Below the pieces are notes generated by a model, which was given only the letters and a program-made list of their open reading frames with translations, did no database searches and was not told the DNA's origin. A program made the position numbers and the translations under genes. Of a stretch of DNA of 64,000 nucleotides, positions 19,641-61,146 are shown in pieces. Positions within the stretch are counted from its first letter, which is position 1. The number at the start of each line of letters is the position of its first letter. Origin of the DNA: Oikopleura dioica (lineage: Eukaryota; Animalia; Chordata); assembly GCA_907165135.1 (NCBI GenBank), contig OU015567.1, positions 5,580,001-5,644,000 of the forward strand. Reading direction: 5' to 3'.

Positions 19641-20925
19641 ATGGACGAAGCGAAAGAAATCTGGATTCCTGAGGCAAAGATTGTGCTCGACATTGCGCCG
19701 GCTGACTTGCCTGATGGTTTCGTGTAAGAAAGGGTCGGAAATTTAAGGGCCCTGACCGCGCCGGGCGCCGATATTTTAAGAACTCAAATTTTTCCTTAAG
19801 TTTTGGCGAAGATGACTCTGATTTCGACCTTTCTGACTGTGAGGACGAGGCGGATGGCGACTTGCCCGATAGTGATGAATCATCATCTGATGATGATGAA
19901 GAAGAGCAGGAAGAGGATGGCTACTGTCCCTATAGCTTGGCTCCGCAGCCTGTGTTAAAAACCTGAGTCAGATTCTGAAATATCCTTTATTTCTTTTTCA
20001 GACCTTGACTCAGGTTTTCTACGCAGGTTGCCGAGCCGAGCCCTTCAGACACGGATGGGGAGAGGAAAATAGAAAAAAGTACGAAGAGATGAGGAAGAAG
20101 AAAAAAGCAGAGAAGGAGAAGAGGAAGAAAAAAGAGACAAAGAACAAAGGCAAATCCAAAAGCAAGAGTAAATCTAAGAGCAAAAGCAAAAGCAAGAGCA
20201 AGAGCAAGAGCAAGGATTACGAGGAAACACCAGCTCAAACGGCTAAAAACAAGTACGGCGAGCCAGTCTTTTTCCGAACAAAGGCACTTCGAAAAGGAAG
20301 AGATGCATGTCTTAGAGCGCACAATGAAAAAAGAGCTCTTCATAAGGATACTCCGATGATGAAGGTAAAACACATATTTTTGCTTTGTCTTCCAGTCTCA
20401 TTTAGCTGAGTAGAAGCATGTGCATTTCAGCGCAAGATTACGCTGATAGAAAAATGGCACGAGAAGTTTCTGGTCACGATCCAGACTGGTAAGGAACTGC
20501 AGATAATCTGATATTAAAAAAAAAAATTAAGGAACGGGGGAGAAAATATGGCCGGAAGCACCAAGTGGCAACATAAACATTATCCCTTGCGACAAGAATA
20601 TTATGAAGAAGCAGCTCGAAGGGCCGTGCAATGCTGGTACGGCGAAATCAACAATTACGACTTTAAAAATGCAAAGTCGAAAAACGGTGGCAAAATCGGC
20701 CATTTCACTCAACTCGTCTGGAAAGACTCGGTCAAACTCGGCGTCGGAATTGCCAAGCAAAGGGAAGGATTCAAAGTTGGACCGCCGCCGAAAGGAAAAT
20801 GGACAACCGGTTTGAATTCTCATTGTTTTTTCTTCAGCATTGAGCTTTTTCAGTGATTTGCCGATACTGGCCGCATGGCAATGTTATGTCCAGAGCAAAG
20901 GATCAAGTCGGAGAATTGAAATGAA
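19641..20925 (+). CDS. CAP/SCP (GLIPR2/GAPR-1-like) protein with acidic and Lys/Ser-rich N-terminal extension
   Basis: CLRAHNEKRALH, GENMA, WYGEINNYDF, GHFTQLVWKDSVKLGVGIA, VICRYWPHGNV; (SK)n tract. Confidence 0.85.
19933..20044. mobile_element. CCTGAGTCAGG-family MITE inside the CAP coding region
   Basis: tagcttggctccgcagcctgtgttaaaaacctgagtcag ... ttgactcaggttttctacgcaggttgccgagccgagccct. Confidence 0.85.
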
Positions 20926-26940: not shown

Positions 26941-28430
26941 TCAGATTCTATTTCCATTACCAAAGCCACCAAGCATAAGTAAATTTCCGCTCTGAAGCCC
27001 GACCAAGACATGACCATAAATATCGCTTAAAATAATTTCGATGATAAAAAATAATTCATTTTGCCGAACTGGTGGATCTCCGATCATACTCCATCCATTG
27101 TTCGTTAGTGTTTCCACTTTCCTCGTGTCGCCAGATAAACCAAAACTAACAGTGGTCGGTTGATTTTTATAAGGCCCAAGTCTTCCAAAGGCATGCCCGT
27201 AATTCGAAGACGTTGTGGGCATTGATTGCAGAGCAACGCTGAAATTTTTATTTTGAATTCGATATATAAAATGTTTTATTTGACAAAAATTAAGCTTATT
27301 TACCTCAAGAGTTGCCGTCAATAGAAAGCTTCTGATTGAGTGCACGCTCGATGCAAAGCTTCTGATTTCGCGCGCGCTCGATGCAAAGCTTCTGATTGCG
27401 CGCGCGCTCGATGCAAAGCTTCTGATTGCGCGCACGCTCGATGCAAAGCTTTTGATTGAGTGCACGCTCGATGCAAAACTTCTGATTTCGCGCGCGCTCG
27501 ATGCAAAGCTTCTGATTGCGCGCGCGCTCGATGCAAAGCTTCTGATTGCGCGCGCGCTCGATGCAAAGCTTCTGATTGCGCGCGCGCTCGATGCAAAGCT
27601 TCTGATTGCGCGCGCGCTCGATGCAAAGCTTCTGATTGCGCGCGCGCTCGATGCAAAGCTTCTGATTGCGCGCGCGCTCGATGCAAAGCTTTTGATTGAG
27701 TGCACGCTCGATGCAAAGCTTCTGATTGCGCGCGCGCTCGATGCAAAGCTTCTGATTGAGTGCACGCTCGATGCAAAGCTTCTGGTTGAGCGCGCGCTCG
27801 ATGCAAAGCTTCTGATTGCGCGCGCGCTCGATGCAAAGCTTCTGATTGCGCGCACGCTCGATGCAAAGCTTTTGATTGAGTGCACGCTCGATGCAAAACT
27901 TCTGATTTCGCGCGCGCTCGATGCAAAGCTTCTGATTGCGCGCGCGCTCGATGCAAAGCTTCTGATTGCGCGCACGCTCGATGCAAAACTTCTGATTGCG
28001 CGCGCGCTCGATGCAAAACTTCTGATTTCGCGCGCGCTCGATGCAAAGCTTCTGATTGCGCGCGCGCTCGATGCAAAACTTCTGATTGCGCGCGCTCGAT
28101 GCAAAACTTCTGATTTCGCGCGCGCTCGATGCAAAACTTCTGATTGCGCGCGCACTCGATGCAAAGCTTCTGATTGCGCGCGCGCTCGATGCAAAACTTC
28201 TGATTGCGCGCGCACTCGATGCAAAGCTTCTGATTGCGCGCGCGCTCGATGCAAAACTTCTGATTGCGCGCGCACTCGATGCAAAGCTTCTGATTGCGCG
28301 CGCGCTCGATGCAAAGCTTTTGATTGCGCGCACGCTCGATGCAAAGCTTCTGATTGCGCGCGCGCTCGATTCAAAGCTTTTGGAAGCTCTTCTTGAAGCA
28401 TTTATACATCCTGCAGTTATCCTGCTAAAA
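26941..28430 (-). pseudogene. Truncated paralog of the Cys-rich/Kelch-like gene, interrupted by a minisatellite
   Basis: TTSSNYGHAFGRLGPYKNQPTTV...GDTRKVETLT...GDPP and HVLVGLQSGNLLMLGG match 10960-11220; about 45-nt deletion; TGA where the parent has CGA. Confidence 0.8.
27325..28383. repeat. 30-bp minisatellite, 35 units (TCTGATTGCGCGCGCGCTCGATGCAAAGCT)
   Basis: 25 units at 27331-28080, one 28-nt unit, then 9 units; no spacers. Confidence 0.97.
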
Positions 28431-36195: not shown

Positions 36196-37558
36196 TTAGG
36201 ACTTCGCATTTTCCTCCCAATACGAAATCATCTCGTAGGAAACAGAGCTTCCACCGCAAACGACGTTGACAATCGGCCCTTCTCCGATTTGAATATCGCT
36301 CAGATATTTGTCAGCGAAATAAGTCGCGGCAAGAGCGGCTCCACAAGAAGGTTCGACGAAGAATTTGTGATGCGCCAGGAAGTTTTTGACGCTGAAAAAA
36401 ATCAGATTTTTTTGAAGAATAATGACTGTTTCACCTCTGAATAGCTTCAGTATCGTGGCAGACTTTGGAAATGACTCCTCCAGGATACGATTTTGCGGCT
36501 TCAAACACTTCAGCAGCGACCGACTTGGTGCCCAGAGATTTGGCGATCGAGTCGATGGCCGGCAAAGTGGCGAGAACTCCAGTTTTCATCGATTGGTTCA
36601 GGCTATCAGTTCCGTTCGTTTCCATGGCAAGCACGGGCACGTCTTGCCATTTTTGAGGATTTCAAAGACTCTATTTTCCTATCGAAAGTAACAGACTTTC
36701 AAATCCCTTGTCAATTATTCTTCTTCAAACCAATTAGCACGCCCATCAACAGTCCTCCTCCGCCAACGGCGCAAATAACCAGCCCTGGCTTCTTCCCCTT
36801 TAGCTGAGTCACAAGTTCATCAACCAAAGAAGCGTGCCCTTCCCAAATAACCGGGTGGTTGAACGGATGAATGTACAAAACCGAGTCATCGACCAGCTTT
36901 TTCATCGCTTCTTCATTCGCTTCGTCCCAGATTTCGCTAAAACCTGTTTTCCTCGTTGATTTCAATTTTAAAATGTACCCGTGATAAATGACCTCGGCCC
37001 CGTGTTCGGAAATATTCGCCGCTGCGAAGTCCGGCGTCGATTTCGGCAGGAAAACAGAACAGGGAAGACCACTCTTTGCACAAGCATAAGCAGCGGCCAT
37101 TCCTGCGTTTCCAGCGCTCGAAGCCACTGCGGTTTTCTACGATAGTTCGATTTTTGCCCAAAAAGAAGAAATTACCTTTCCATCAAGTTTTGCCTTTTGA
37201 ACTAGTCTTCCAATACCTCTTATTTTGAAAGAACCAGCTGGTTGAAGATTGTCCAGTTTCAGCAACACTTCATGTTTCGCCAGATCTGATAGCTTCGGGG
37301 ATTCAGCTAAGCAAGGGCGCAAAAACCTGTGTAGAAGCCTGAGTCAGGGACCTAAGTAAGGTCTTTTAAAGACCTCTCGATCTATTCTACCAATTCTGCG
37401 GCTTCTTTGAGCAAAAAAGCCGCGCGATATCTTTATTCACAGCTTTTTCAGGACCTCGAGTCAGGTTTTAACACAGGTTGTCGAGCCCAGGCTAGAGGAG
37501 AAACGATATGAAGATGACTTGATTGATCATTTTCATATTCGTATGAAAATTTGCCCAT
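36196..37558 (-). CDS. SDS-like: L-serine dehydratase (PLP-dependent, SDS/SDSL-like)
   Basis: HLHIVSPL|AESPKLS...LKLDNLQPAGSFKIRG, SSAGNAG, HPFNHP, AVGGGGL, VLAMET, VEPSCGAALAA, VCGG. Confidence 0.9.
37307..37494. mobile_element. CCTGAGTCAGG-family MITE inserted in SDS exon 1, flanked by TAG(C) direct repeats
   Basis: TIRs at both ends; removing 37491-37307 restores CTA GCT GAA (L-A-E). Confidence 0.85.
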
Positions 37559-37941
37559 TTTTAAAACTGATTTTATGAAAAAATTTTTGTAAAAAAGCAT
37601 TTTCATTCTAGAGAAACTTGAATTTTACTGCGACCAGCTGTGCCAGGGACAACAATAATTTGTCAAAGACGTCGAGCGTGAAGAACTCGTGGACTTCCGA
37701 TCGTCCTGGGCCGATCACTCACCGTGAGCTTCTTATTTTGACGCGGCGGAAGTGGATGGTCACGCTTATTTGGTTTCATTGCCGTTGTGACCTACCGCTG
37801 CCTCCCATTTTTAATCCCGTTTTCAAGGGGAAATTCAATCTTCTATAAGTCACAAGGCTCAAAAAATGGATAAACCGGAGGGTTTCTTTCCGATTTGATC
37901 GCATATTTAATGGTTTTTCTGAAATTTCGAAAAGGGCCTGA

Positions 37942-38100
37942 AAAAGCTTGAATCAGAAGCCGCGTAGCGGCTTTTTTGAAAATAAAGCCCCAGAGCGGCT
38001 TGGCCAAAATTTTCATTATTTCTTATCTTTTATTCTGGCGAAACCGCTTTGCGGCTTCGTTTTCAAAAAGCCGCTACGCGGCTTTTCATTCAAGCTTTTT
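37942..38100. repeat. About 160-bp hairpin built from AAGCCGC-N3-GCGGCTT modules
   Basis: aaaagcttgaatcagaagccgcgtagcggctttt... / ...aaaagccgctacgcggcttttcattcaagctttt. Confidence 0.8.
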
Positions 38101-38647
38101 TAGGCGCTGACTCAGGTTTCAGACAGAGCCCCTGAAGCCGTCAGAATTCGAAAACAGTAGTGGCAAAATCGGAAAATTACACAGTTTGAATGATTTTTTG
38201 ATAATTTGGCTAATCCTTCTCGCGCCTGGTTCCCGCGCACCTGGCGCATCAAGCGTCCCCGGATTGACCTTGAAATCCTCAAATCTCGAAAAAGCTAATT
38301 TACTAACGATTAGTGATCGTTTTTGACCTTTTTTCGTCGAAACGCTTGAGTGCAGATTCTCTTTTTTCTGTTTCTGGCTGGTTTTGACGCTCGGAACTCG
38401 TCAATCACCATCAAAGGACACGATTTAGCAGCCTAATTTAATACTTCCTATTTGCTTTGAATTGACGACTTCCTCATTTTTTGAAAAGGAAGAAGGGGAA
38501 GACCGTTAATTTTTGTGAACTGATTGAGATTCATCATTTTTATTGAAAATAAGTCGAAAAGAGAAATGACGATAAAATGATGCTGAGTTGGAAAACCTGT
38601 GTAAAAACCTGAGTCAGGGTCCTAAAACTGAATAAATCTTCAAAAAG

Positions 38648-42685: not shown

Positions 42686-42848
42686 GGCTCGGCAGCCTGT
42701 GTAAAAAACCTGAGTCAGGGTCTGAGAGGGCAAAAATGAAAATTTTGGCAAAGCCGCTTTGCGGCTTCTTTTCAAAATTAGCCGCTACCCGGCTTTTCAT
42801 TTTTGCTCTCTTGGACCCTGACTCAGTTTTTACACAGGTTTCTGAGTC
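42686..42848. mobile_element. CCTGAGTCAGG-family MITE
   Basis: ggctcggcagcctgtgtaaaaaacctgagtcaggg ... gaccctgactcagtttttacacagg. Confidence 0.85.
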
Positions 42849-44209: not shown

Positions 44210-44353
44210 AGCTGAAGCCTGTGTAGAAACCTGAGTCAGGGTTCTAAAAGTGCTTTGTGATAGAAAGCTGCCTTGCGGCTTCGTTTTTGAAAAGCCGCAC
44301 CGCGGCTTTTTATTTTATTTCGGTCAGGACCCTGACTCAGGTTTCTACACAGG
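44210..44353. mobile_element. CCTGAGTCAGG-family MITE upstream of or within the 5' end of the ankyrin gene
   Basis: gcctgtgtagaaacctgagtcaggg ... ccctgactcaggtttctacacagg. Confidence 0.85.
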
Positions 44354-58809: not shown

Positions 58810-61146
58810 CTACGGCTTATTCCTACCTCTGTCCATGTAAATATCATCAGTGCAAGAGTGGTCATCCCATCTTCCATAAACGGCTCCTTGGACTCTGATT
58901 CGTCCCCCAATCGGGCATTCGATCTTCATCGACAAACTCTTGTTGAGCTCAACTGGCATGGCTTGACAAGCATTAGCTTCTCGACAAGGACAGTGGTCGA
59001 TGCAGATCGGCTTTGTCAAGTCAATGTCCATGTCGATGATGCTCGGCGCGCTGAATCGACTCGTGCTGTATTCTTCCCACTTGCCATTTCGACACTGGAT
59101 CTTGTGATAGCCGTGGAGCCATTTTCCTTCGTTGCATCGGTGGACGCAGCGGGCAGAAATGAAGCCAACGCGATAGGGGTAACATTCAATTGAGCCGTCT
59201 TTCAGGTCGTTTCTAGCTTCGCAATCGCCGAAACGAGGATCTGCAATGGGCTTGGCAACCTGTGTAGGAAACCTGTATAAGAGTCTGATAAATCTTTTAT
59301 GCCTCATTTCAAAATCCTGACTCAGGTTTTGGTCAGGTTTCCGAGCCCAAATCTGAAGCGTCAATTTTCGCAACTGTCGTCGCTTTTGTCGTCGTTGTAG
59401 ATGTCGTCGTAGTCGTCGTTGTCGACGTTGTTGTACTTGAAATCTCAACGCATCTGTATTTTTGCGGAAGATTGGCCCAGACGCACGGGCATCTGCGGCA
59501 GGAGCAAATGCACTGCGGCTGCGGCAGCGTTCCAGGTTCGAGTTGAAAGCCCTCTTTGCACTTGATCGGGCATTTTGACATTGCTCGCAGGCCGTTGTCG
59601 CAATCGACTTCGGCGTCAGGGTGGATTTCGAATGGCTGGCATTTTTTATTTGCCCTTGTGTTTGTCGGGAGCACCCAGCCATTCGTCAATTTTGAGGCGA
59701 TCGGAAAAATGACGGGGATCGGAGTTGGCTAAAGTCGGATTTTCATTCAATTTTCAACTTGATCAATTATTAAAATCAGAATGCATATTATCAAAAAGGT
59801 CGATTTGGTTATAAAAGGGAGCAGACTGCCCTTTTTGCGGCAGCTTTTTTTTTTAATAATGAAGAACTTAGCTGGTTAAAAAAAGTAATACGACCAGCAC
59901 ACCGCAAGTTTAAATTATACATTTCGTGTTCTGAAGAGAGCTCGAAATAAGACGTTCAAAAAACGAAAAAATGGAGAAGACAGAAATTTCGGAATTTCAT
60001 CCTCTTTCAGAGATCTTTTTACTTCCAATAGGTAACCAAAAAATGGAATCAGATCTCCCTTTGTTCAATTTTCGTTCGATAAATATCAATTAATTAAAAT
60101 TAAGCGCTTATCATTTTGCTGATATCCTGCTGCTTGATGAGCTACTGGAGCGAGCGATCTTCCTCTTGGAAATATAATTACACAAAAAACTCTTATCTGA
60201 TCTCGTTTGTCTGAAAATACAATTCTTGGGAGATTTAGTTGATTGAATTTGAATCGCGTTTGTAATTCCAGGAAGCCGTTCGTTCATGAAAGAAGTTGAC
60301 GTTGACTGAGTTGGTTCGAGAGTCGGTTTTGTTGTTGACGGTGGGCTCGTTGTTGTTGTCGCTGTTGTGGTTGTGGTTGTTGTTGTTTGGGGAGTTGTTG
60401 AACTTGGGAGGGAAAACTGCCACTTTCCAACATTGTCGGGTTTGATTGCTTCGGGATTAAATGATTGCATTTCAGTGCTGTAAATAAGGGTGTTACGTCG
60501 ATAAATTCAAAAAGAGAATTGTGATCTGGAAACATGATTTGAAATCATTGATTTCGCTCTCTTCTATTGTCTCATACTCTTATTGAAAAAACTTACTTGA
60601 ACAAAAGCGGCTTTTTCGACTGTTTCTTTGATTTCTTCGCCTTTTTCGACTTCTTCTTGTTCTTTTTGCCCTTTTTCTTCTTTTTCGACGGAAGAGAATT
60701 GATCGCGTCGATGATGCTCTTCCCCTCCCGAACTTCTTCCCTCTTCCAAGCTCCATTCCTTCTAGAATTTCGCTGGCCGAGAGTTCCTCCATTTCGTTTT
60801 CTCCCAAAATCTCTTCGAAAATCGGCAAATACGGGCATTTCTGGCAGTCGTCTGAGAGCGGGCCCAGTTTGCAGAGTTTCTGGCACTTGTCGATCCCGAC
60901 TTCGAAGAGGGTGCAGAGCTCTGCAGCGCATCCAGCATGGCGGCAAGTTTGAGTAAAGTCGACTCCAGCGCATTCTTTTCGGACGTCCATTCCGATGAAC
61001 GGTTTCTCGCAAGTGCTAATGATCCCCCGACAAGAAGGACTAGCGATTTCCATGAATTCTCTGTATTTCGACTGTACATTCTCTCCATTCACAAAAACAA
61101 ATAAGCTCAATAAACTTTTAAAACGCATGTTCCGACTGTCTTTCAA
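58810..61146 (-). CDS. Secreted mosaic protein: Cys-rich N-terminus, Lys-rich and Thr-rich linkers, two sushi-like domains, SUEL/Gal-lectin start; apparent frameshift near 60735 and MITE at 59247-59349
   Basis: Signal MRFKSLLSLFVFVNG; CPIKCKEGF, CVHRCNEG...IQCRNGKW; IECPIGGRIRVQGAVYGRWDDHSC. Confidence 0.7.
59247..59349. mobile_element. CCTGAGTCAGG-family MITE between in-frame coding segments
   Basis: tgggcttggcaacctgtgtaggaaacctg ... cctgactcaggttttggtcaggtttccgagccca. Confidence 0.8.

Follow-up and report, generated by a model that had tools for sequence, protein, structure and literature searches.

A recent MITE insertion in a serine dehydratase exon of Oikopleura dioica as a candidate newborn intron

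Precedents for introns derived from transposons

Transposon insertion has been tabulated as a source of introns in Oikopleura dioica (PMC3443670, citing Denoeud et al. 2010). The locus described here, which lies in a 64-kb stretch of O. dioica DNA (the window), resembles the cases covered by that table: the genus is the same, a transposon in a coding region would give rise to a lineage-specific intron, and the setting is one of very high intron turnover and of GV-AG introns (PMC3443670). Unlike the tabulated introns, it is a candidate intron. GT-AG and GV-AG introns are the only two classes described for Oikopleura, about 11 to 12% of its introns are non-canonical, and GA donors in O. dioica normally stand in an AG|GAA context. 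The median intron of the species measures about 49 nt (PMC8008620).

A further precedent comes from the larvacean Fritillaria borealis, in which MITEs act as introns (Henriet et al. 2019; PMC11282704, PMC13326754). The Fritillaria elements, like the one in the window, have terminal inverted repeats (TIRs) and occupy species-specific positions, and they are removed together with one target copy, a property shared by the exact-excision reading considered below (PMC11282704, PMC13326754). Unlike the present case, most of the Fritillaria introns have AG/AC or AG/AT termini accompanied by YAY triplets, and duplicated U2AF paralogues are needed for their removal (PMC11282704, PMC13326754). In that class, YAY triplets would precede the 5' site and stand at the 3' end, and no exact register at our locus has termini of this type. 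The other introns of the interrupted gene also differ from the Fritillaria pattern, being described as ordinary GT-AG introns, with intron 4 noted as odd.

The introners of Micromonas and Aureococcus (Huff et al. 2016; PMC11282704), in the account given by the cited source, are likewise short DNA transposons with TIRs and a target duplication on the 3-nt scale. They can combine a splice site of their own with one in the duplicated target, which at this locus would be the AG of TAG (PMC11282704). In the same account, introners are overwhelmingly spliced introns in hundreds of genes, whereas most of the family in the window sits outside sequence that is recognisably coding. Judged from the genomic alignments, the insert is introner-like in that it occupies a coding position at which relatives carry no intron. 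The comparison with introners and with the MITE introns of Fritillaria, drawn in the original prediction, is apt as a model (PMC11282704, PMC13326754). The nonconventional introns of euglenids offer another parallel, with paired ends, borders that resemble target duplications and, as under exact excision here, non-GT-AG termini; their pathway, unlike the one preferred below, is non-spliceosomal, and it belongs to a distant lineage and is not known from tunicates (PMC11282704, PMC12501133).

The origin of introns has mostly been inferred from old, eroded cases, and the event at this locus is recent. The case is also well framed: there is an empty site in sister lineages, the family is recognisable, two insert lengths seemingly coexist and the product is known to the residue. 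At issue is what becomes of a newly inserted exonic MITE in a chordate whose spliceosome is permissive: exact splicing, splicing that adds residues, or no splicing. If the gene is simply broken, the locus is an ordinary transposon lesion. Intron birth by transposon is a known route, to which this locus adds a plausible candidate documented by its empty sites, its defined family and its allele variants.

The insertion, its empty sites and its family

The interrupted gene runs on the minus strand of the window (Table 1). From an ATG at 37558 it reads MGKFSYEYENDQSSHLHIVSPL to 37493 and then enters element sequence; from 37307 it reads AESPKLSDLAKHEVLLKLDNLQPAGSFKIRG..., and five more exons lead to a stop at 36196. 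An insertion of 185 nt (37491-37307), consisting of the element and one TAG copy, splits the first coding exon of this serine dehydratase gene. As originally predicted, serine dehydratase N-terminal sequence lies on both sides of a TIR element, a point on which the minus-strand reading and the homologue alignment agree. The element is bordered by TAG(C) direct repeats. Its proposed length, its frame and its internal stop also held up: the window has exactly 185 nt more than five related lineages (L001-L005), the insert shifts the frame (185 mod 3 = 2), and unspliced reading meets a TGA inside the element after 36 codons.

Table 1. Features of the interrupted gene and of the inserted element, in window coordinates
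Feature	Position	Strand	Evidence or remark
TCTAGA, candidate male-germline core promoter element	37607..37612	-	53-54 nt upstream of ATG
Coding exon 1, from ATG through TAG copy 1 (22 codons + 1 base)	37492..37558	-	Aligns with N-termini of P0001-P0004, P0159 and P0160
Target-site copy 1, TAG	37492..37494	-	Empty site in L001 is CCCCTAGCTGAA
MITE without target copies, 182 nt assuming a TAG duplication	37310..37491	-	Window-specific 185-column gap against L001-L004; inverted repeat; hairpin fold; family copies
5' terminal inverted repeat (gene orientation)	37443..37493	-	Candidate donors GG 37488, GA 37482, GT 37474, GT 37472, GT 37454
Internal 90 nt, absent from second allele in DNA run X27	37350..37439	-	Includes GCGGCTT...AAGCCGC hairpin 37398-37423 (inverted repeat)
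3' terminal inverted repeat	37310..37360	-	Branch-like CTGAC 37347-37343, pyrimidine stretch, ACAG|G (AG 37328-37327); putative splice signals
Target-site copy 2, TAG	37307..37309	-	Its AG is the acceptor in the exact, GG-AG and GA-AG solutions
Coding exon 2, with PLP-lysine motif GSFKIRG	37176..37306	-	Pfam PF00291, 3.6e-8
Coding exon 3, after 39-nt GT-AG intron	36979..37136	-	Domain match and homologue alignment
Coding exon 4, after 42-nt GT-AG intron	36713..36936	-	Domain match and homologue alignment
Intron 4, 64 nt	36649..36712	-	Conserved in four lineages
Coding exon 5	36435..36648	-	Domain match and homologue alignment
Coding exon 6, ends in stop codon, after 43-nt GT-AG intron	36196..36391	-	Domain match and homologue alignment

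Contigs of all five related lineages carry uninterrupted coding sequence at the site (...SPLAESPK...); L005, which was added by a metagenome scan, is continuous there as well. The closest relative, L001, reads ...CCCCTAGCTGAA... at the empty site, and the window reads ...CTAG[element]TAGCTGAA. This empty site shows a target-site duplication, with a length compatible with TA, TAG or TAGC; other copies of the family are often flanked by TTAG, CTAG or CTAA. A reading-frame search with exon 2 found short genomic reading frames from other assemblies (P0001-P0004) that read through the site in the same way, P0001 as ...HLHIVSPLAESPKLSDL... and P0002, P0003 and P0004 likewise. The empty site that had been named as a check on the prediction was found in L001 DNA and, at the protein level, in four more lineages. 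With five relatives reading through, the MITE does lie in a formerly continuous, conserved exon, as had been claimed. The prediction had also been held open to the objection that an intron might predate the MITE in relatives. Since all five are continuous at the site, the intron does not predate the element. Judged by the L001 comparison, the insertion postdates the split of the window's lineage from its closest sampled relative. The codons CTA GCT at the target occur only in the window and L001, and the four more distant lineages, L002-L005, have CTC GCT; given this restriction to the clade of the window and L001, a synonymous change created the TA(G) target.

The arms of the element are 51 nt long and 71% complementary, and the element folds at -77.8 kcal/mol (z = -5.7; no shuffle folded as well). 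Its core, AACCTGTGTAGAAAACCTGAGTCAGGG, recurs through the window, where 40 terminal-repeat halves make up about 16 paired elements of 80-155 nt within 64 kb (0 in 20 shuffles). With its TIRs, its target duplication, its short non-coding sequence and its many copies, the element is a MITE, a non-autonomous DNA transposon whose family is locally abundant. In the window, most members of the family are not set in recognisable coding sequence. Besides the insert itself, two copies fall between open reading segments, at 19933-20044 and 59247-59349; one of their hosts encodes an acidic/basic low-complexity protein and the other is a cysteine-rich 'sushi/lectin' gene. We also considered a family-wide splice register, CCTGT|GT...CAG|G. 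It was rejected, being out of frame at the copy 19933-20044 (neighbouring 'CAP' gene), where CCT|GT...TCAG|G, of 62 nt, is in frame. A search of the L001-L005 contigs for family copies found none, a result that says little, as metagenome contigs break at repeats.

Hairpin modules similar to the GCGGCTT...AAGCCGC of the element (37398-37423) recur at 42752, at 44265 and in another element that lies slightly upstream (~37950-38140); the module is seemingly gained and lost without regard to the terminal repeats. Elsewhere in the window, a 30-nt unit is repeated in tandem about 35 times across 27198-28400.

The interrupted gene, its alleles and its expression

Exact excision of the insert leaves a 990-nt frame of 329 aa with no defect. 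In this gene model, the 185 nt are removed along with GT-AG introns of 39 and 42 nt, an odd 64-nt intron (intron 4) and a GT-AG intron of 43 nt. Four exon pieces match the PLP-dependent enzyme family PF00291, and the exon pieces tile larvacean homologues end to end, with no residue lost or gained at SPL|AESPK. A profile built from the exon pieces found rat L-serine dehydratase (1pwe, E = 3.5e-97) as the best solved relative and also matched human SDSL (2rkb, 2.9e-96). The predicted product is an L-serine dehydratase, a fold-type II PLP enzyme with a full-length domain. The claim of a serine dehydratase with intact catalytic motifs downstream of the element was thereby borne out, the 329-aa product having both the PLP-lysine motif GSFKIRG and the GGGG loop and matching 1pwe at 3.5e-97.

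Intron 4 stands out by its borders. It starts after AATAAT with TGACAAGGGATT, which is invariant in four lineages, and ends before GGCAAG or GGCATG; in relatives it lies at 966-1028 of L001, 1131-1218 of L003 and 3161-3259 of L005. All homologues have a tryptophan at the junction (NNW), and only the borders T|GA...AT|GG (window and L001) or T|GA...TC|GG (L003 and L005) keep it. No GN-AG register that keeps the tryptophan is common to the four lineages: GA-AG works in the window and L001, and L003 has no AG. The flanking codons change at third positions, which indicates that the gene is read across intron 4. These border comparisons suggest that splicing in this organism extends to one or more introns that belong to no GN-AG class. 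A conserved hairpin in intron 4 was considered and rejected, as RNAalifold gave no consensus pairs and the single-sequence z scores were -2.3, -0.3, 0.1 and -0.2. The terminal pairing of this intron differs between lineages.

The gene family is under strong purifying selection, with ω = 0.047 between the window and L001 (dS 0.47) and 0.04-0.05 among the other lineages. As the haplotype with the insertion appears to be young, this family constraint cannot be assigned to chromosomes that carry the element. When changes were polarised with L003 as outgroup, the window's branch carried 24 synonymous and 9 non-synonymous changes and the L001 branch 27 and 1 (Fisher 0.016 by nucleotide, 0.10 by codon). 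This asymmetry of replacements fits some loss of constraint on the window's branch, where ω is still about 0.12 and the replacements are all conservative.

Next to the window itself, the insertion could be followed in DNA sequencing runs. Nearly all of the element region is represented in the likely source run and in two other DNA runs (shares 1.00, 0.95 and 0.86), and the filled site occurs with zero differences in independent DNA runs. In one run, X27, a contig identical to the window covers 37320-37521 at depth 57. A second allele in this run has a SNP at 37491, with the contig ending 31 bases away in unique sequence of exon 1, and a joint from 37349 to 37440 that skips 37350-37439 at depth 60.4 (overall depth of the variant, 55-60); depth in the bin 37354-37410 falls to 69, about half. 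Among the joints listed for X27, none spans the full 185 nt. From these summary tables, both X27 alleles seem to be filled, one of them with a 95-nt form that lacks the GCGGCTT...AAGCCGC hairpin. An element present on both X27 alleles and in three DNA runs is common and not a rare lesion.

Across a block of about 600 nt, ~36638-37260, which ends about 80 nt from the element, the two X27 alleles show about 8% divergence (up to 13% in small introns). They are near-identical on the side of the element, exon 1 and promoter, and also at 36433-36628. This mosaic suggests recombination or conversion between deeply diverged haplotypes. Because the alleles are nearly identical on the element side, the insertion haplotype may be young, and with a young insertion an intact downstream gene is uninformative on function. 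Comparison of the second allele with the window over 36882-37230 gives 18 synonymous changes and 3 non-synonymous ones (binomial 6e-8). We withdrew a reading of these 18 and 3 changes as purifying selection after insertion, as the divergent block stops about 80 nt short of the element and recombination can explain the pattern.

For expression, three oligo-dT RNA runs with the same species label (X4-X6) were tested. Among 29 placed reads (13, 10 and 6 per run), none came from the window's serine dehydratase gene. All 29 lie within 37222-37261, the 40 nt of the PLP-lysine motif, and share four differences and the same non-matching flanks on both sides. Their loose ends match the transcript contig L085 (Logan contig of ERR9850633) at 30/30 bases each and 60/60 together, and L085 encodes P0160, a serine dehydratase 56% identical to that of the window. 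The X4-X6 reads therefore derive from this second serine dehydratase and are uninformative on the window's gene; P0160 is either a paralogue or a protein from another organism in the RNA samples. Two run searches found no RNA run containing the stretch. The matches to a 138-aa piece, to P0008 and to the exon-piece profile included no full-length or transcript-derived protein of the gene, and exact look-ups of two window reading frames in the protein collection gave no match.

A promoter motif offers one likely explanation for the missing reads. TCTAGA is a spermatogenic core promoter motif of O. dioica, with a median distance of 44 bp to the transcription start (PMC6389100). Upstream of the gene, it stands at the same distance from the ATG in five of six lineages (the window, L001, L002, L003 and L005, at 2448-2453 in the last), with TCTGGA in L004. 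On the basis of this motif, the gene may be expressed mainly in testis, and the placement would imply a 5' UTR of about 10 nt. The absence of RNA reads would be explained if the gene is testis-specific.

Splice registers and the fate of the insert

To list the registers in which the insert could be spliced, every GN donor was combined with every AG acceptor, and combinations that were in frame and stop-free were kept. This gave 30 GN-AG solutions across the insert; among so many, a compatible frame would be expected to turn up by chance, and an in-frame solution proves little. The original prediction had named two in-frame solutions, exact removal and a GT-AG intron within the TIRs. Both were recovered among the 30, along with two that it had missed and that use the AG of the duplicated TAG (37307) as acceptor. 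The GT-AG solution joins GT 37472 to AG 37327, removing 146 nt and leaving 39 nt, or 13 added residues between ...SPL and AESPK.... Of the two additional solutions, the GG donor at 37488 would add one residue and the GA donor at 37482 three, both in frame. Exact removal could proceed through the registers TA..CT, AG..TT, GC..TA, CC..AG and CT..GC.

The donors are poor (GTTAAA, GGGCTC and GACAAC), and the candidate donors and the acceptor region lie inside the -78 kcal/mol stem. On the acceptor side, the 3' terminal repeat presents CTGAC, a pyrimidine-rich stretch and ACAG|G in that order, as does the family consensus; CTGAC and ACAG|G are a plausible branch site and acceptor by their sequence and arrangement. 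GA-AG was rejected as the favoured register, since CTC|GACAAC does not fit the published AG|GAA context. The 90-nt internal deletion of the second X27 allele leaves all in-frame GT-AG and GV-AG registers intact and would shorten the GT-AG intron that starts at GT 37472 to 56 nt, a length near the species median.

A non-autonomous DNA transposon entered TA(G) in codon 22/23 of the serine dehydratase gene. In the reading that we prefer, the element would be transcribed together with the gene, and the ordinary U2-type spliceosome would remove it as a new intron by means of signals that the element itself carries. The acceptor side would be supplied by the branch-like CTGAC, the pyrimidines and the ACAG|G of the 3' repeat, and the donor by GT 37472 of the 5' repeat. 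A close second would be splicing from GG 37488 or GA 37482 to the AG of the duplicated TAG, which would fit the GV-AG introns of Oikopleura; within the spliceosomal reading, we place the GT-AG solution slightly ahead of these two. Removal of the element by the spliceosome in a GN-AG register, with the transcription, splicing and register that it presumes, has in our judgement about an even chance of being correct. It is favoured by a filled allele that is common, a gene family that is constrained, signals that are usable, the permissive introns of Oikopleura and the precedent of transposon-derived introns. It is weakened by the absence of RNA reads of the gene, the weak and buried donors, the young haplotype, the excess of replacements and the expression of a second gene.

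The allele may instead be a recent null, a serious rival explanation that we regard as possible though rather unlikely. The element would then remain unspliced or be spliced out of frame, the stop after 36 codons would be read, and the loss would be tolerated, perhaps through a second gene like that of P0160. Retention of the element does lead to a stop codon, and the splice signals are weak and lie within a stem. The RNA of X4-X6 contains the second gene and nothing of the window's gene, but testis-specific expression, as hinted at by TCTAGA, could account for that absence. The excess of amino-acid changes on the window's branch (9 versus 1) also points to a null, although the family is constrained in every lineage compared (ω ~0.04-0.05) and the window's own branch, at ~0.12, has only conservative replacements. 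In a haplotype that looks this young, the remainder of the gene is expected to be intact even if the gene is dead; however, a filled site in three DNA runs and on both X27 alleles is unexpected for a harmful null in a large population.

Compared with spliceosomal removal in a GN-AG register, exact non-canonical excision appears improbable. It would take out the element and one target copy and restore ...SPLAESPK... with no GT or GV donor, the TIR hairpin pairing the ends in the manner described for the MITE introns of Fritillaria and the nonconventional introns of Euglena. Among the registers, it is the only one that gives the sequence of all relatives, and the stem brings the two TAG copies side by side. 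GT-AG and GV-AG are nevertheless the only classes described for Oikopleura, and none of the five exact registers fits the AG/AC and AG/AT termini with YAY triplets of Fritillaria. Intron 4 of the same gene, apparently processed with non-GN-AG borders, speaks for such a pathway, but its hairpin is no better than shuffles in three of four lineages. In its general form, the proposal would be that insertions with hairpin ends are excised exactly in this lineage and that neither GT or GV donors nor AG acceptors take part, with intron 4 as an old case and the MITE as a newborn one. We consider this improbable; if true, it would extend Fritillaria-like non-canonical splicing to Oikopleura, with a dated before-and-after pair. 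That the insert is an error of assembly, or that the element invaded an intron already old, is scarcely credible, given the filled site with zero differences in independent DNA runs and the uninterrupted coding sequence at the site in five relatives.
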